Counted from the whole stretch's first letter, positions 11,270 through 22,614 are shown. The stretch is DNA of 60,941 bases, filler included, from Dugesia japonica (GCA_001938525.1; 5 parts of 5 records of this genome joined end to end with filler, not necessarily neighbours in it); one strand, 5' to 3'. Made by a program: numbers and translations. The notes: generated by a model from the letters alone, not told the origin.

Positions 11270-12061
11270 GGAAGAACTGAAGAAGACAATCACAGAAGTG
11301 ATAAGACAGTGTGAAGCGTGCCAAAAGAAAAAAGTTAATACGGTGTCAACAAAAGAAACAACAGTAAAATTAGGCGCAAATTGTCCATTTGAAAAGATAT
11401 ATATGGACATATTGGGCCTTTTCGAGAGACTGTGAACAGACGAAGATATGTATGTTGAATAATAGACCAATACAGTCGATACATAAGCCTAATGGCAATC
11501 AGCAAGCAAGATGATGAGACAATTAAAAAAGTGATAATGGAAAANTGGATCCTGAGATTTGGAGCACCAAGAGAAGTTCACGTAGACAGCTGTAAGACAT
11601 TCGAATCGTAAAACTTCAAGAATCTGATGGAATCGATGAATATAGAAATACACTTTTCAAGTCCGTACCATCACAATAAAAACGGAATTATAGAGAGACA
11701 ATTCCACACAATTATAAACTGTATTAACGCAGCCGCAGATGAAGATAGAAGAAAGGATTGGAGTAACAGTATACCGGATATTGAATACATGATGAATGCA
11801 ACAAGGCAAAGGACATTGGNNNNNNNNNNNNNNNNNNNNNNNNNNNNNNNNNNNNNNNNNNNNNNNNNNNNNNNNNNNNNNNNNNNNNNNNNNNNNNNNN
11901 NNNNNNNNNNNNNNNNNNNNNNNNNNNNNNNNNNNNNNNNNNNNNNNNNNNNNNNNNNNNNNNNNNNNNNNNNNNNNNNNNNNNNNNNNNNNNATACAAG
12001 ATCACGGATAAGGTACATGAGAGAAGATATCGTATACGAAATACAAAGTGAAAAGAGCTAG
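11270..12061 (+). pseudogene. Gypsy integrase
   Basis: QCEACQK..PFEKIYMDILG..WILRFGAPREVHVD..SPYHH..NGIIER. Confidence 0.85.
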
Positions 12062-12270: not shown

Positions 12271-12936
12271 TACATAATATATAATATATAATAATATATA
12301 ATGTTCATATTAGTATAAACAAATCTTCAAAAAATCATGCAACAAAATGTAATTTAATGCGTGTTGATTATAGGAAAATATTTAACTATTTGTATGGTAA
12401 TAAAATTAAAGTTGATATAAAACAACCGACTACTAAAAAATGATTTTCTTTACCAGAATCAAGTATTTGATCAGTGAAAACGGAAAAAGATTAAAAAAAC
12501 TTAATATAATTGGATACTTCAGAAAGATGTATTGAAGTGTTGGTTATCAGCAACATTTTTATTTGATGATAATAAAAAAAATCAAGAATCTATCGAAGTA
12601 TGGATTTACTTATAAAGTAGATCAACCAGAATTAAAATTTTACAAAGTTAAAATCCTTAACTCTAAGATTCCATATTTTAATTTCAGAAGTGAGGTAGAA
12701 AATATTACAATCTAGATTTTAACAGGTTTTTATAAATTACCATTTATTTAAATTACTACGAGTAAGAAAATTAAAGCATATATTGGAAATGAACAGATAG
12801 AGGAAATAAGAATTTTTACTAATAACCTTATTAGTTATGGACCGCTGGTTGTAAACCTTTAGATATTGACTTAACCGAATGAAAATTGTTTCACCATAAC
12901 TATTTGCATAAATTATTTATTAAAGTGAAAACTTAC

Positions 12937-15900
12937 AGGATCAAGTAAAAGTATCAAATCAATTATATTTTGACGACCTTCCCGTTTGGCAAGTTCGATA
13001 AGAGAATCTCCGTTCTGACACGATTAAATATATTCCAAATAATAATTATTAATAAATTACTTCTGTCAAAGCGTTCATGTTGCATTTATTATCAAACAAT
13101 ATTTTTATAATATCAATATAACCATATTTACAAGCCAAATGTATCGGTTGATATCCATTCTAAATCATCATTTATTCATAAAGCATTTTGTATATAACAA
13201 ATAAAATTACATAACCAGATGCATTGATATCACATTTGTTTTCAATCAAAATTTTCACAATATCAATATGACCATTCCAACATGCAAAATGTATCGGTTG
13301 ATATCCATTCTAAATTTTCATTTATTCATAAATAATTTAGAAAATAACAAATTAATTACTTTTTCAGATGATGTAATATCACATTTGTTTTCTATCAATA
13401 TTTTCACAATATCCACATAACCATTCCAACAAGACAAATGTATCGGTTGATATCCATTCTAATTTGCGATTTATTCAAAAATTAATTATTAAAATGAATT
13501 AAATGACTTTATTAGATGCATTAATATCACATTTCTTCGCAACCAATATCTTCACAATATCGACACAACCATACTTCAAAGCAAAATGAATAGGTCTATT
13601 TTCATACTAAGTTATCATGTATTTATAAATTATTAAGTATAAAAAACAAATGAATAACTTTATCACAGGCATTGAAATCACAATTGGTTTCTTTCAATAT
13701 TTTTACAATATCAATATGACCATTCTCACAGGCCAAATGTATCAATTTATTTCCCCACTATATTATCATTTATTCATAAATTATCAACCAATAACTTACT
13801 TTATCTGATGCATTCATATCACATTTATTTGCAATCAATAGTTTCACAATATCAATATGACCATTCTTATAAGCAAAATGTATCGGTTTATTTCCATTCT
13901 AAATAATCAATTATTCCTAATTTATTTAGTAAATAAAAAATATAAAAACCTTATCAGATGCATTGATATCACATTTATGATCTATCAATATTTTCACAAT
14001 ATCAATAAAACCATTCTTAGAAGCATAGTGTATTGGTTGACATCCATCCTAAATAATCGTATTATATTATTTGTAACATATTATTTGAATAAATAACAAA
14101 TGCATTACTTCATCAGATGCATGGATATCACAGTACTTTTTTAACAATATTTTCACAATATCAATATGCTTATACATTAAAGCCAAATGTATGGGCTTAC
14201 AACCCAACTAAATTATCATTTATCATGAAATCAATTCGTCAATAACAAATATAATACTTTAGCAGATGCATTGATATCACATTCATTTTCAATCAAAAAT
14301 TTAACAATATCGATACTACCAAGAATACAGGCCAAATGTATCGGTTTAAATCCATTCTAAATTATCATATATTCAGAAACTATTTGCTAAATAAATATAT
14401 TACATAAACAGATGCATTGATATCACATTTTTTTGAAATCAATATTTTCAAAATATCTAAATGACCCTTTTTACAGGCCAAATGAATCGGTTGATCTCCA
14501 TCCTAAATTATCATTTATTCACAAATTATATAGACAAAATCAAATAAATTACTTCATCAAATGCATTGATATCACATTTATATTCCAAATATATTTTCAC
14601 AATATCAATATAATCATTCTTATAAGCAAAATGTATAGGTTTATTTCCATTCTAAATTTTCGTTTATTCAAAAATTATTTAGTAAACAACAAATAAATTA
14701 CTCTATCAGATGCATTGATATTACATTTGTTTTCTATCAATAATTTTACAATATCAGTATTACCATTCTTAGATGCAAAATGTATTGGTTGATATCCCCA
14801 CTAAATTATAATTTTATCGTAAATACTTTAATAAATAACAAATAGACTACAATTTTATCAGATACATTAATATCACATTTGTTTGCTATCAATAATTCAA
14901 CAATATCAATATGACCATTCTTGAAAGCAAAATGTATCGGTTTATTTCCATTCTAAGTTATAGTTTATTCTTAAATTATTTAGTATAAAGAAAATAAATT
15001 ACTTTATCAGATGCATTAATATCACAGTGGCTTTCTAATAAAATTTTCACATTGTCAATATAACCATTCTTACACGCCAAATGAATTGGTTTATTTCCGT
15101 TCTAATTCATGGATTCATGAATTATTTATTAAGTAACAAATACATTACTTTATCATATGTGTTGATATCGCATTTGTTTGCAATCAATATCTGAACAATA
15201 TCTTTATAACCATTTTTAAGAGCCAAATGTATTGGTTGATATCCGTCCTAATTTATCATTTATTCGTAAATACTTTAGTAAGTAAATAAATTACAAATTT
15301 ATCAGATGCATTGATATCACATTTGTATTTTATCAACATTTTCACAATATCAATATGACCATTCTCACAGGCAAAATGAATTGGCTTCTTTCCATCCTAA
15401 ATTATTAATTAATAAATTATTAAAAAAACAACGAATAAATTACTTTATCAAATGCATCGATATCACACTTCTTAGAAATCAATATTTTAACAATGTCAAT
15501 ATGACCATTCCTAGAGGCTAAATGTATCGGTTGATATCCCCACTAAATTATCATTAATTGCATACATTATCTAGTAATTAACAAATAAATTACTTTGTCA
15601 GTAGCATTCATATCACAATTGTTATCGATCAGTATTTTCACAATATCAATATAACTATTCTTAAAAGCCAAGTGTATCGGTTTATATCCATACTAAATTT
15701 CCATTTATTCAAAAATTATTTGTTAAATCAAAAATACGTTACTTTATCAAATACATCGATATCACATTTGTTTTTTATCAATAATTTTACAATATCAATA
15801 TGACCATTCTCACAGGCCAAATGTATCGGCTTATTTCCATACTAAATTATTATTTATACATAATTGTTTAGTAAAAAACAATTAAATTACTTTATCAATT

Positions 15901-18900
15901 GTATTTACATTACATTTATTTTCAATCAACAATTTCACAATATCAACATGACCCCTCTCACTGGCCAAATGTATCAATTCATTTTCATCCTAAATTAACA
16001 TTAATTAATACATTATTTAGTAAATAACAAATAAATTACATAATTAAATGTATTGATATCACATTTGTTTGTAATCAATATTTTCACAATATCAATATAT
16101 CCATTTTTATAAGCAAAATATATTGGTTTATTTTGATTCTAAATTATTATTTGCTCATATATTACCTAGTAAAAAACAATTAAATTACTTTATCAGTTGC
16201 ATTGAAATCACATTTGTGTTCTATCAATATTTTCACAATATCAATATGACCATTCTCACAGGCATAATGTATCGGTTTAATTCCATTCTAATTTATGATT
16301 TATCAATAAATAATTTAATAAATTTAATATAATGTTTTGTTTTTTGTGGTTACTGTGTGTTTATTATAATTTTTGTGTCGTCTGTTATATTATATAACAT
16401 GATTTACAGGGGGGTTATGGAAACGATCGGTGCCACTCATATCCGGATTTTAAAATAGCTATGTAAAATTTAAACAAATTCAACTTTTCACTTGACTTTT
16501 CTTAAACTTCCACCCAAACTGGCTATCCCGAGAAAATTATCATTCAAATACTCCATAAACTTAACCTTGTAAAGAAATAAATGACTAAATCGTCAAAAAC
16601 TGACCAAAACAAACTAATTTGAGAAAAATTCAATCAATATTACCTAAACCGGGTAAATAATTAACCATTTCTGAGGAAATAATTGACAAATTTCATCAAG
16701 AATTACCCTTCTTAGCAAATAATTAACCAAGTTTGTCTATACTGAGTAAATAATTGACCAAATTGTCCAAAACTGACCCAAATTGATTAATCCCAAGGAA
16801 AATTTCAGCCAAATTGCCCAAAAATGAACCAACTTAACAATTCCTGAGAAAATAATTGACTGAATCACCCAAAAATGACCCGAACCGAGCAATCTCGAGG
16901 AAATATTGAACCAAATCATCTAAAAATTACTCTAGACCGTTAAAAAATTGACAATATTCGACCTCACCAAGAAAACTTTCAACCAATTTCACCTTAGTCA
17001 CCCAAAAATTACCAATCCCGAGGATAGATTCGACCAATTCATCCAATAAATTACCCAAACCGAGCAATTCTGAGGAAATATTAGACTAAATTTACCTGAA
17101 CCAACCAAAAAGTCACCTCATTCGACTTCACTGAATAAATTCCCAACTAAAATGCTTGAAAAAATTCTTCTGCTTAAAAGCCTAAAGAATTTTCGCAACT
17201 AAATACACAGGGAAATACTAAAACAGTTGATCCTATTACATAAAATTTCACCGATTAAATTAATCTCATGACATAATTTGTGTGCAAAAAATTTTTCCAA
17301 CTAAATTTACAGGGAAATACGAAAACAGTAACGTAATATTGACCAAATGATACAATTTATGATGAAATTTTTAAATTCCCAACTAAATGCATTAGGATTA
17401 TGTTTCGTTACATCATTTATTCTGGTGGGTTCACACACACCTTGGAATGTGTGTGGTGCGGAGTGCCGGTATATATCTACTGATAACCTATACCATAAAT
17501 CATACAACAGTGCAATGTGTTTTCGCTAGTGGATGGTTCAGTGTGCTCACATTTACCTATTTTGCTTTAATAATACTCAATTGAAAAATAGCAAACGCGT
17601 TTATTTATTTCTACAACTTAAACAAAATCCGGAATATATACAGCTAAATAAAACAAACTCAAGATCTAACAATTTTCATAAAGATTTTTTAGCAAGGAAT
17701 ATTTCCTGAAATATGAGAAATTCTAACAGGCAGAAATACAGATAATCTGAAAACAATGGAAAAAATTCAGATAAGATAAATGAAGAAAGGTTTCCTACAA
17801 TCTACAGTACAAAGATATACAATACATATCAAAAGAACGCACTTGATGAACCAAAACAACAACAACACGGAGATAACAATAAAATATCTTACCGCCAAAA
17901 TGAACAAAATGTTCACTAAAAATAAGGAAATCTGGAAAAAAAATTAAATTAAATTAGAAATTCCCGCACACGAGAACGAGATCACAGCCATTAATAAATT
18001 ACAATAGTAAATCACATCTTAAAGACTTCCTACAAAACCTATTCAATTCAAGGAATTAACACTCCCGAAATTTATTCAGGAACTATGATAACAAAAAAAC
18101 CAATATACACTACTTTCACAATAAACTTCGTTAAAGAAAAACAAAAATGTTACCAGTGGTAGCACCAACATTCAGTGATAATCATCACACTATCACAGTG
18201 AATCTATCAGTATAGATTTTTTAATTCCATACAGGACATGTTATTTCCCTAATTCCTCTATCAAATATTGAACAACTGTTTAAAAACACAAAATATCAAC
18301 TGCAGTCAATGGTTCAACAACTAACACGTTTGGTGACAAGTAATTAGAAATGATCGTTAACAACAGACCCTTTAAATGGACCTTTACAATCGCTGAAGTT
18401 CAAAAGGCAATACTACGAGAAAATTTCCAGACATCTTATCAACATTTAGTAGATTTACACAATAGGAAACTAATACGACGCAGAAACAAGTAAACCCAAA
18501 CAAATACAATGCAGTTCAACAGAACAATTCAAAATAAAATTGATATTGTGTTGAACATAGTATTTATAACTCAAAAATTCCAGATAAAATAACCAAATTA
18601 CTAAAAAAACATAAAATCATCACTGAAAATATAGAAATAACAAGAAATATTTTGTGAATCGCAGAACATGCTTTCATAACTAATGGTAACTCTATCAACT
18701 CAAAAGTTAGACAGCTTGACTCTAACAAAAATGAAATCGCAAAACTAATCTTTACAAACCTAGAAACAAACAATATCGTTAAAAGATCCAAATTAACCTG
18801 GTCATATGCGTTAATGCTCAACAGAAAGCAAACGGATATTGAAGAGCTTGTGGTAAATATCGAATTAGAATAAAATAGCTTATCTACAAATGCTTACTAT

Positions 18901-21081
18901 CAATTATCAAAGACATAATAATCGGGATAATTGAGACTTAATTACTTTCAAAGATGACTTACCAAATGTATATCATTACATCCAAATCAAAAATGAAAAT
19001 GTAGCAAAACTGAAATTATTACATCCATTGGGATGTATGAGAACAACATGGGGTTTTTGGGCTTAGAAATACACCTTCCACATTTCCAAAACTCATGAAC
19101 CAAATGTTTAAAGATAAAAACACATTATAATATTTAGATATTTTAATTGCGAGTCCTACGACGAAACAATATTTAACAGAGATAGAACAAGTATTCAAAA
19201 CACTATACAGTAATAACTTAAAATTAACCACAAAGAAATTTGAATAAATCAAAAGAAATTGAATTCGTGGAATATACATTAAATCACATAGATACAAAAC
19301 TTATAGAAAACAAGCTAAATAATATCAGAAGATATGAATTACAAAAAAACCATAAGAAAATTCAGAGGATCCCTGGGAATTTTAAGGTTTTACCATTCTT
19401 ACATTGATAAAAACCATTTCAATCAGCGATGTGTATTCCATTTTAATCAAAAACCTTCAATCTTTCTATAACTGTCATTATTCCCCATTCTTAGAACTTA
19501 TTGGCTTTATTTTCCAAAAAACAAATTATCGTGCCTTTTAACGGACTTATCATAAATTATGATAGATAACAATATTATATAACTATGAATATATAAATCC
19601 CGAAATCAAAATTTTAATACAGAAAAGAACAATTAATTACTTCGTCAGATACATTGATATCACATTTGTTAACTATCAATATTTTCACGATATCAATATG
19701 ACCATTTTTACATGCCAAATGTATTGGTTTGTAACCATTCTTAATTACAATTTATTCAAAAATTATGAAGTATTTAACTAAAAAAAAATACTTCATCAGA
19801 TGAATTAATGTCACATTTTTTTGAAATCAATATATTTACAATATCTATAAGACCATTCATACAGGCCAAATGTATCGGTTGATATCCATTCTAAAGTAAC
19901 ATTTATATATGCATTATTTAATTAAAAAGCATATAAATAACATATTTATCAGATGAATTCAGAGTACATTTGTTTTCTATCAATATGCTCACAACACCAA
20001 TATGACCATTTTTACAGGCAAAATATATCGGTTTATTCCCATACTAAGTTAACAATTATTCAAAATTTAGTAAAAAACAAATAAATTACTTTATCACATA
20101 CATTGATATCACATTTTTTAGCAATCAAAATTTTAACTATATCAATATGGCCATTCTTACAGGCATAATGTATTGGTTGATAGCCCTTCTAAATTAAAAT
20201 TTATTCATAAATTATTTATTAAATAATTAATAAAATACTTCATCCGATGAATTGATATCACATTTTTTTTCTATCAACATTGTCACAATATCAACATAAC
20301 CATTCCTATAGGCCAAATGTATTGGTTGATATCCATTCTAAATTATCATTTATTCACAAATTATTGAAAAAAGAACAAAAAAAATTACTTTACTAAATGC
20401 ATTGATATTACATTTATTTTCTATCAACATTTTCAAAATATCAATATTATTATTCATACAGGCCAAATGTATTGGTTGATATCCATTCTAAATTATCATT
20501 TATTCAAATATTATTTAGTGAATATCAAATAAATTACTTCGTCAAATGCATTAAAATCACATTTATTTTTTATCAACCTTTTCACAATATCAATATGACC
20601 ATACTTATAGGCCAAATGTATCGGTTGATATCCTTTCTAAATTGTTATTTATTCTTAAATTATTTAAAATATGATAAATTACATATTTATCAGAAAAATT
20701 GATATCACAATTGTTTTCTATCAATATTTTCACAATATCAATATGACCATTCTGGAATGCAAAATGTATCGGTTGGTATCCATTCTAAATTATAATTTAC
20801 TAATAAATTATTTAGTAGATAAAAAATAAATTACTTTATCAGATACATTGACATCACATTTTTTTTCTATCAATAATTTTAGAATATCAATATGACCATT
20901 CTTAGAGGCATAATGTATCGGTTGATATCCATTCTAAATTTTCATTTTTAAAAAATAATTAGGTAAATAACCCGTAAATTACTTCATCATATACATTGAT
21001 ATCACATCGGTTTTCTATCAATATTTTCACAATATCAATATGACCATTTTTATAGGCAAAATGTATCGGTTTATATCCATT
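12937..21081 (-). CDS. Spliced multi-ankyrin-repeat host gene, one repeat per exon (at least 32 ANK exons plus a C-cap exon; 5' end missing, 3' end unresolved)
   Basis: Exons, all AG|exon|GT, phase 0 and stop-free: 20983-21081, 20835-20933, 20683-20784, 20538-20636, 20389-20487, 20239-20337, 20090-20188, 19942-20043, 19792-19890, 19641-19739, 16189-16287, 16040-16138, 15891-15989, 15743-15841, 15594-15692, 15444-15542, 15295-15396, 15149-15247, 15003-15101, 14851-14952, 14702-14800, 14553-14651, 14404-14502, 14258-14356, 14109-14207, 13950-14048, 13800-13898, 13659-13757, 13508-13606, 13360-13458, 13211-13309, 13061-13159. Cap exon 12937-13014 reads NGDSLIELAKREGRQNIIDLILLLDP. Repeat consensus NGYQPIHLACKNGHIDIVKILIENKCDINASDK. 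Confidence 0.93.
13061..16320 (-). repeat. ~150-bp tandem array A: 22 units of ANK exon plus ~50-nt intron
   Basis: Unit spacing is about 141-159 nt, and the introns are also homologous to each other. Confidence 0.95.
16555..17130. repeat. Degenerate short-period repeat tract (ccaaaa/aattgacc-like) inside the enlarged ANK intron
   Basis: Recurrent aataattgacc, ttaccc and ccgag words. Confidence 0.5.
17165..17335 (+). repeat. Dispersed repeat homologous to 29865-30035
   Basis: Shared words gcttaaaagcctaaa, tcctattac, aaattaatctcatgac, tttgtgtg and aactaaat..cagg in the same order. Confidence 0.75.
17540..19400 (+). mobile_element. Heavily decayed Ty3/Gypsy gag-pol remnant in the ANK intron
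   Basis: Fragments TAVNGST.NTFG, FKWTFTIAEVQKAIL, SKVRQLD..IAK and GLRNTPSTFPKLMNQMF, with many stops and frameshifts. Confidence 0.7.
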
Positions 21082-21101
21082 CTAAATTACGACTTATTCA
21101 T
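19641..21101 (-). repeat. ~150-bp tandem array B: 10 units of ANK exon plus intron
   Basis: Same unit as array A. Confidence 0.95.
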
Positions 21102-22614
21102 TGTCAGGATAAGTAAATAAATATCTTTAAGTTTTCAATTTTCAAAATTAATTAGAAATTAAAAANNNNNNNNNNNNNNNNNNNNNNNNNNNNNNNNNNN
21201 NNNNNNNNNNNNNNNNNNNNNNNNNNNNNNNNNNNNNNNNNNNNNNNNNNNNNNNNNNNNNNNNNNNNNNNNNNNNNNNNNNNNNNNNNNNNNNNNNNNN
21301 NNNNNNNNNNNNNNNNNNNNNNNNNNNNNNNNNNNNNNNNNNNNNNNNNNNNNTATGTCTAATTGAGTATCTATGCTTTGCTTCTAATATAGTGACAGCG
21401 ATTAATTCAGATAGTATTATGGATAGAATGATGCTTGTTATGTTTAGAAGACATTGAAAATATTGAAAGATTCATATAGATGTATGAAATGTATTTCGAT
21501 GTTAAGAACATAAGCAATACAAAAGAGCAGGAAAGTTTGGTAACTTGCTTGATAGAAGAATGGTTAGCGAAATACATGGAAACGTTTCAAAAAACATAAG
21601 GATTTGTGTCTCGGCATCCCAGGGCATTTGAAATAATAAGAAATATGATTCGGGATTTTAAAGATCTATTTAAATTCAGGCGATAATATGAAGATATGGA
21701 AACTTATANNNNNNNNNNNNNNNNNNNNNNNNNNNNNNNNNNNNNNNNNNNNNNNNNNNNNNNNNNNNNNNNNNNNNNNNNNNNNNNNNNNNNNNNNNNG
21801 GGTAATAGTCGAATATAAAAAGTTTTACTGAGAAAAATAAAGGAAATTTATGGTATTAAAAATACTTTACGATTAATCGACAAATTAGAAACTAAAAGAG
21901 AACAAATTAATGTAATACAAGGTGCTCCAAAAGAGATGACACAGTTTAAACAGATAGACGTTTGTATACAGAGAAGGAATATATTGGTTGCAGACAAATG
22001 GGATGTGGATCAGATGGATATTGTAAAACAAAAATCAATATGAAAGGAGATCCAATACAGACAACCAATAGGTTTGGAAAACTGTATTATAATAGAATAA
22101 GAAGACGATGCAATTCTCACTGTAATTCAGCATTGCTATGCGCATGGAAGAAAGATAGACAGGACATCCAGTAATGTTTGGATTTCAGGAAGCTAATTAA
22201 TATTACAGAGAAACAAGCATTTCCCACGACAAATATTGAAGAGATGCTTGATATGTTGAATTTGATGACTTACTTCGGCACAAGTAGAGTTGAATAGTGA
22301 ACAGTAGGATAAGACAACAATCTCAATTAGACAAGGCTAGTATTGCTTCAACAGAATGCCGTTTGGTATAGCAGCAGCATCTGATATGTTTCAGAAGCTG
22401 GTGCTAAAGGTACAGAGAAATCGGAGGAATACATATGCTCAAGATATTAAGGAAGACAGTTAAGATCAAGAATTAGAGAGATTATAAGAAGCTATATTTT
22501 CCGTTAAAAGGCCAAAGTTTCGAAAAGTATAAAACGTGAAGTAACGAAAGAATCAGATAGTTATTCTCTGTTCAAAGTGATGTTCATAGATTTTTGAGAC
22601 CCATGGAAGGTGAC
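21102..22614 (+). mobile_element. Decayed, internally deleted Gypsy element related to 8960-12270, inserted in an ANK intron
   Basis: Starts TGTCAGGAT (compare TGTAAGGAT at 12107) about 20 nt into a repeat intron. Contains CLDFRKL..KQAFP..NIEEML and YCFNRMPFGIAAA. Confidence 0.85.

Follow-up and report, generated by a model that had tools for sequence, protein, structure and literature searches.

Exon array and its ankyrin repeats

The window, a stretch of 60,941 nucleotides (nt), filler included, from Dugesia japonica (GCA_001938525.1), consists of parts of five records of this genome joined end to end with filler, which are not necessarily neighbours in it. Its minus strand contains, from position 21081 down to 12937, a tandem array of short exons resembling a 150-bp satellite (Table 1). 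An earlier note on this DNA read the array as a gene with one ankyrin repeat per exon, and the array is indeed protein-coding, as its units match the Ank family, its reading frame is under selection and it gives rise to spliced RNA. The gene type is already known, namely a long ankyrin solenoid built by tandem duplication of an exon–intron unit. Such genes evade annotation based on open reading frames (ORFs) and get mistaken for satellites.

A mechanical scan for open segments of 96–105 nt preceded by AG and followed by GT recovered 32 in-register units between 21081 and 13061, 28 of them with an exon of 99 nt and four with an exon of 102 nt, exactly as had been described. The AG and GT dinucleotides are kept at all 64 exon edges, and none of the 32 exons contains an in-frame stop or a frameshift, while both alternative frames are stopped in every one of them. 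The 102-nt exons (ending at 20683, 19942, 15295 and 14851) carry their added codon at the 3′ edge, which is the only way in which exon length varies; internal exon indels are absent. Every repeat exon is in phase 0 with a length that is a multiple of three, and any exon subset is thus frame-neutral. The 30 small introns between the repeat exons range from 42 to 60 nt with a mode of 50 nt, 18 of them being off the modal length, which agrees with the claim that exons change by whole codons and introns drift in length. The same range had been given for all introns of the array; however, intron 10 was overlooked, and with its 3353 nt it makes the array discontinuous, so that Tandem Repeats Finder reports two blocks of period 149 (13083–16323 and 19624–21101). 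The GC content is about 24% across the repeat array. As had been noted, the prokaryote-style ORF list misses the gene, for it holds no minus-strand ORF within the array. The plus-strand antisense ORFs of 50–87 amino acids (aa) listed at 13268–16332 and 20472–20829 are repeat artefacts, which are misleading for ORF-based annotation.

The repeat exons are followed by an open exon (exon 33) which brings the predicted product to 1086 aa, so that the length of about 1086 aa given in the earlier note is right. The peptide of exon 33 opens with NG in register with the repeats and has no Pfam match. Against the repeat profile it scores 2.4 bits, which is not significant as shuffled peptides reach 6.0 bits; exon 33 is therefore rejected as an ankyrin repeat. 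If the putative last intron behind it were retained, a stop would follow eight codons on. At the other end, the intron-like stretches upstream of exon 1 show that the array or the gene runs on, or formerly ran on, in that direction.

Table 1. Features of the ankyrin array and of the neighbouring DNA (positions in the window)
Feature	Position	Strand	Remarks
Second gypsy-type reverse transcriptase (RT) remnant	21354–22614	+	beyond gap, upstream of gene; further gap at 21709–21799; tblastx to left RT 50–55%, E 1.9e-30
Two tandem intron-like stretches upstream of exon 1	21082–21165	−	no exon between; abut N gap 21166–21353
Block A, exons 1–10	19641–21081	−	introns 1–9 of 46–52 nt; scan and splice-site table
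Exons 1–5	21081–20983, 20933–20835, 20784–20683, 20636–20538, 20487–20389	−	
Exons 6–10	20337–20239, 20188–20090, 20043–19942, 19890–19792, 19739–19641	−	
Intron 10	16288–19640	−	3353 nt; GT at 19640–19639, AG at 16289–16288
Decayed retroelement-like insertion	16322–19620	+	approximate boundaries; antisense to gene; weak identification
Block B, exons 11–32	13061–16287	−	introns 11–31 of 42–60 nt; scan and splice-site table
Exons 11–16	16287–16189, 16138–16040, 15989–15891, 15841–15743, 15692–15594, 15542–15444	−	
Exons 17–22	15396–15295, 15247–15149, 15101–15003, 14952–14851, 14800–14702, 14651–14553	−	
Exons 23–28	14502–14404, 14356–14258, 14207–14109, 14048–13950, 13898–13800, 13757–13659	−	
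Exons 29–32	13606–13508, 13458–13360, 13309–13211, 13159–13061	−	
Exon 33, predicted	12937–13014	−	78 nt = 26 codons, phase 0, AG/GT flanks; putative degenerate C-terminal capping unit
Putative last intron	12936–12900	−	37 nt, GT..AG, intron-like; sequence reading and alignment to unit consensus
Two codons and TGA after putative last intron	12899–12891	−	TGA at 12893–12891
Ty3/gypsy retrotransposon flanking the 3′ side of the gene	9317–11818, within 9008–12061	+	outside gene; broken by N runs

Single exons or an alignment of the exons served as queries in the protein searches. All eight exons scanned singly against Pfam (three of block A and five of block B) pass the gathering score of Ank (PF00023), with 28.7–39.1 bits against a threshold of 21.1, and the matches span model position 1 or 2 to 32 or 33. 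The exon borders are thus the repeat borders of the family, and each exon tested holds one repeat, as had been proposed. The other 24 exon peptides align to these eight at 48–85% identity, and all 32 align free of internal gaps. Across the 32 repeats Ile6 and Cys26 never vary, Gly2, Pro5, His7, Ala9, Asp16, Ile17 and Leu21 are nearly so, and PIH stands here in place of PLH. Neighbouring exons are joined in frame at nine RNA junctions, which places consecutive repeats in one polypeptide.

The most variable repeat positions are 1, 3, 4, 10, 11, 14, 23, 24, 30 and 31, among which 1, 3, 11 and 31 presumably correspond to positions randomised in designed ankyrin binders; such a pattern is what any ankyrin family shows. 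Pairwise amino-acid identity among the repeats is 0.61 on average and 0.88 at most, and the mean is thus high, as repeats above about 40% identity are rare in natural repeat proteins (PMC5100051). Searched against solved structures, the repeat profile matches consensus-designed ankyrins best (PDB 6mol and 5le2; E 3.5e-67), followed by ankyrin-1/2 and NOMPC. As designed ankyrin repeat proteins (DARPins) are the best matches, the units are close to the idealised ankyrin consensus. DARPins are, however, artificial proteins with identical frameworks, whereas the array belongs to a natural gene with its own PIH and invariant Cys26.

Transcription and splicing of the array

RNA mapping covered positions 15140–21139 with four runs from four studies, and the joints considered here are those listed for this region. 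Introns 3, 6, 7, 8, 9, 11, 12 and 17 are exactly removed in contigs of X8 and X14, which come from two studies, and these contigs show no differences from the locus. The spliced-out introns have CT..AC ends on the plus strand, that is GT..AG on the minus strand. Record 9 of X8 joins exon 15 to exon 16 with zero mismatches and adds intron 15, while three raw reads of the run X22 likewise lack intron 9. The first mates of X22 fall on the plus strand 10–70 times more often than on the minus strand, which under the usual stranded protocol means RNA from the minus strand. The locus is thus transcribed from the minus strand and spliced at nine predicted junctions, all cut precisely at GT–AG, and the RNA check of junctions proposed in the earlier note comes out in favour of the exon model. 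At lower depth there is also an unspliced contig across intron 8.

Most reads and contigs are 95–99% alike to the locus and fit it only in part, and many joints connect exons in an impossible order at very high depth. These partial fits and impossible joints are most simply explained by a family of related ankyrin genes whose expression is stronger.

The phase-0 structure led to the proposal that the exons could be skipped in any combination without loss of frame, which is arithmetically true; nothing shows that it is used. There is one canonical skipping joint, 20337 to 20538, which would omit exon 5 and occurs in X14 alone, in a single contig with a shorter side of 28 nt. Exons 5 and 6 begin with an identical stretch of 28 nt (20460–20487 and 20310–20337, minus strand), and AA is the ending of exon 4 as well as of exon 5. 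A k-mer contig which leaves exon 4 therefore has to break off just there and fits either exon, and the exon-5 skipping isoform is rejected, as its joint reflects a tie in placement on exon 5 or exon 6. The remaining long skips have non-canonical ends and sides of 22–27 nt. Isoforms with differing cassette sets are thus not supported by the RNA joints listed, a test limited by the shortness of the contigs. Near-identical exon starts yield false exon-skipping joints in short-read or de Bruijn data, which is a trap for isoform calls in an array of this kind.

Selection, history and interpretation of the gene

The exons differ from one another by 0.242, 0.160 and 0.296 at codon positions 1, 2 and 3, respectively, and the pooled Nei–Gojobori ratio of nonsynonymous to synonymous change (dN/dS) among them is 0.47. 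In a neutral simulation of 20,000 trials, in which each exon was given its own observed count of changes from the consensus under the base composition of the introns, an average of 22 of the 32 exons gained a stop and no trial had fewer than 12 such exons, against none observed. Open frames by chance are thereby excluded, and the reading frame is under selection. A non-coding 150-bp satellite with accidental open frames would account for the 149-nt tandem period, the AT-rich composition and the transposon-rich region, yet its probability is close to nil: it is refuted by Ank scores above threshold in each scanned exon, by the codon-position pattern, the dN/dS value and the simulation, and by the existence of spliced transcripts.

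The introns are also related to one another, as their pairwise difference is 0.267 compared with about 0.62 expected from base composition. They are thus homologous, and the duplicated unit is the exon together with its intron, as the earlier note had held. Its further view that the unit was amplified recently is not upheld by the history of the copies. The maximum-likelihood tree of the 32 units is a star, with support lacking for 23 of its 29 inner branches and a median of 0.14 changes per site on the end branches; exon identity stays at 0.77 for each lag from 1 to 11 units, and the best pair reaches 0.90. Neighbouring units are no more alike than distant ones. The star tree and the flat identity fit one old burst followed by independent divergence, and neither the unit tree nor identity by lag gives any sign of ongoing exchange or homogenisation between units. 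Repeat positions 3 and 4 covary (YQ 13 times, NK eight times; Fisher p 2e-4), which hints at two founder unit types; the sole well-supported clade of the tree comprises units 12, 20, 27 and 29, which are of the NK/NR type. When the sites were compared one by one, in a crude test, with a neutral rate of 0.34, the lowest p value among the 33 sites was 0.02, which is not significant after correction.

The locus is most probably, with a probability of about 0.72 in our estimate, the 3′ part of a minus-strand gene encoding a constitutively spliced ankyrin solenoid of at least 32 repeats with a short tail, and a member of an expressed family. Such a gene would have arisen when a unit of 149 nt, consisting of a 99-nt phase-0 exon for one repeat and an intron of about 50 nt, was tandemly copied in a single burst. 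The copies would then have diverged independently, with selection holding the exons open and the splice sites intact, and a retroelement would later have landed in intron 10, sparing the intron ends. The gene is transcribed and its small introns would be constitutively removed, as the RNA shows for part of them, and splicing would be expected across intron 10 too, with the 3′ end as predicted. In the protein, the stacked repeats would form an elongated superhelical platform, where the hairpin and inner helix of each repeat may present a fixed surface particular to that repeat, and the product is most likely a multi-site protein-binding scaffold. The protein may also be larger and multidomain, with the array as its C-terminal binding arm and its N-terminal part beyond the assembly gap. 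On this interpretation the locus illustrates cleanly how long repeat proteins are built, with an exon and its intron copied at least 32 times and then held open by selection, and as the introns were copied along with the exons, they still record the duplication.

Several points weigh against this interpretation. The scaffold function would follow solely from the general behaviour of ankyrin repeats. The sequence upstream of exon 1 as far as the N gap contains no start codon, 5′ exon or N-terminal domain, and a gypsy remnant lies beyond the gap. As only intron-like stretches and then Ns are found there, the start of the gene is outside this piece, and the gene can not be affirmed as intact, as the earlier note had called it, the more so as intron 10 holds a transposon remnant. 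Only 20 of 331 raw X22 reads are at least 99% alike to the locus, so that this copy is weakly expressed there. The status of X8 and X14 as RNA is a guess, which the exact intron-less contigs favour, and a near-identical paralogue or allele may be their source. The joint from 19641 to 16287, across intron 10, is absent among the joints listed, and a single mRNA for both blocks is what we infer. The known RNA junctions fall within the mapped region, while exons 19–33 and the 3′ end are predicted from sequence.

Some of these points would also be explained by a transcribed relic, i.e. a recently dead fragment which was severed from its 5′ part by the upstream gypsy element or disabled by the insertion in intron 10. 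The absent 5′ end, the transposons on both sides of the gene and inside it, the exon-less intron-like remnants upstream of exon 1 and the few exact reads in X22 are all consistent with this. However, a relic is unlikely, and would have to be one that died very recently, as the complete lack of stops and frameshifts and the 64 intact splice dinucleotides persist after about 14% divergence per unit, which indicates long-lasting selection; moreover, exact spliced contigs come from two studies and from both blocks, and both ends of intron 10 are intact.

Less probable still is the combinatorial diversification locus suggested in the earlier note, in which one-repeat phase-0 cassettes would be skipped, duplicated or swapped, for instance in immunity or transposon control. 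The symmetric phase of all 32 exons, the family of related expressed arrays, the coincidence of four of the approximately ten most variable positions with what we take to be the randomised sites of designed binders, and the NACHT-ankyrin proteins among the best profile matches speak for it. Fungal NLR arrays of ankyrin, TPR or WD repeats, which are the nearest model, combine more than 85% repeat identity with repeat-number polymorphism, concerted evolution and positive selection at the surface (PMC4986451). The array shares with them unusually similar repeats within a gene family, but its identity is 61%, its tree is a star free of near-identical units, neighbour effect or other sign of exchange, and in the crude test, once corrected for the number of sites, none stands above the neutral expectation. 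Introns are unmentioned in the text of that paper. The only canonical skip is the placement tie described above and the other long skips are non-canonical with short sides, so that the proposed RNA check for exon-skipping isoforms offers, among the joints listed, no example. Equally improbable is the wider version, in which a large expressed family of arrays, made of frame-neutral one-repeat cassettes each with an intron, would diversify its binding surfaces as cassettes are gained, lost or exchanged among alleles and paralogues, or through regulated skipping, and would act as the sensor arms of immune or anti-transposon proteins resembling NLRs; if true, the cassette family would be an intron-based counterpart of fungal NLR repeat shuffling. 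The constitutively spliced solenoid is thus preferred, and a new biological question would arise only if cassette variation, or an N-terminal domain of immune type, came to light in long reads.

Related proteins and surrounding transposons

When 1.84 billion proteins were searched with a profile built from the 32 exons, 87,668 matches were obtained, with no orthologue among them. The top matches are giant animal proteins with 20–50 repeats, several of which have a NACHT or Peptidase_C48 domain before the array, such as KXJ71500.1 of Aedes albopictus, XP_068905980.1 of Tenebrio molitor and XP_046559267.1 of Haliotis rubra. The giant invertebrate NACHT- and Peptidase_C48-ankyrin proteins resemble the present gene in their C-terminal arrays of 20–50 repeats, but their repeats share only 45–55% identity with the present consensus, a similarity generic to ankyrins. 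The Aedes gene, whose array is the only one that could be checked, is intronless over 2130 aa and does not share the one-repeat-per-exon build; in the Haliotis protein the first 1075 residues lie in five exons of 132–1311 nt, and the ankyrin region is not placed on the locus. These proteins are analogues rather than orthologues.

In vertebrate ANK genes, many of the repeats are likewise encoded by 99-bp exons. A literature search on one-ankyrin-per-exon genes gave nothing citable. The membrane-binding domain of canonical ankyrin-1/2 (PDB 4rlv, 7tw3 and 1n11) is likewise a long uninterrupted stack of 33-residue repeats, but it has 24 repeats, which are followed by ZU5, UPA and death domains, whereas the frame here ends about 28 codons after repeat 32. 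The ZU5-UPA-death module was not found after repeat 32, where 26 codons and a stop 2–8 codons later follow and the tail has no Pfam match. Compared with canonical ankyrins, the repeats here also resemble one another much more closely (61% pairwise), and homology extends to their introns. NOMPC (TRPN1) has 29 ankyrin repeats (PMC5100051), a comparable number, which form a spring of about one superhelical turn (PDB 5vkq) and match the profile; however, a TRP channel stands C-terminal to its repeats and none is present here.

Metagenome DNA scanned with a codon-degenerate motif of the array gave no match, while a scan with a two-unit pattern gave 120 loci, none of them with ankyrin exons, which are chance matches in unrelated repeats. 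Seven of these loci (L003, L005, L006, L012, L062, L077 and L081; contigs Ga0209149, Ga0209339, Ga0209428 and others) belong to one unrelated interspersed repeat of about 43% GC, which occurs on many contigs of a few metagenomes and probably derives from some animal in the samples. A giant-virus or bacterial origin of the ankyrin repeats is rejected, as the units carry spliceosomal introns which are removed in RNA.

The ankyrin gene sits in transposon-rich DNA. As aligned with the intron consensus, intron 10 begins with about 20 nt and closes with 33 nt of ordinary intron and the rest is inserted, which fits a simple insertion into a 50-nt intron. The insertion is A-rich on the plus strand, as in the gypsy element, and contains at 18664–18816 a weak RT-like stretch on the plus strand, which tblastx aligns with the left gypsy element's RT at 31% along 51 aa (E 1.3e-5). 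Its open pieces have no Pfam match, and neither a pair of long terminal repeats nor a clear target-site duplication was found for it. RNA depth is near zero at 17540–19539; some depth occurs at 16740–16939 and 17140–17339, partly from the plus strand. A 51/102-nt tandem repeat of about 3.6 copies (Tandem Repeats Finder) lies at 16742–16927 inside the insertion.

Scans for tRNA and Rfam families found no RNA genes. The gypsy element which flanks the gene on its 3′ side contains a gag zinc knuckle, a protease-RT ORF of 532 aa at 9656–11254 (Pfam RVT_1, E 2.9e-31) and integrase remnants, together with weak Pfam matches to zf-CCHC, Integrase_H2C2 and rve_3. Its closest relatives are at most 76% identical and lie on short metagenome contigs, and one relative is deposited as a protein of a Bacteroidales metagenome-assembled genome, which is probably a mis-binned eukaryotic contig.

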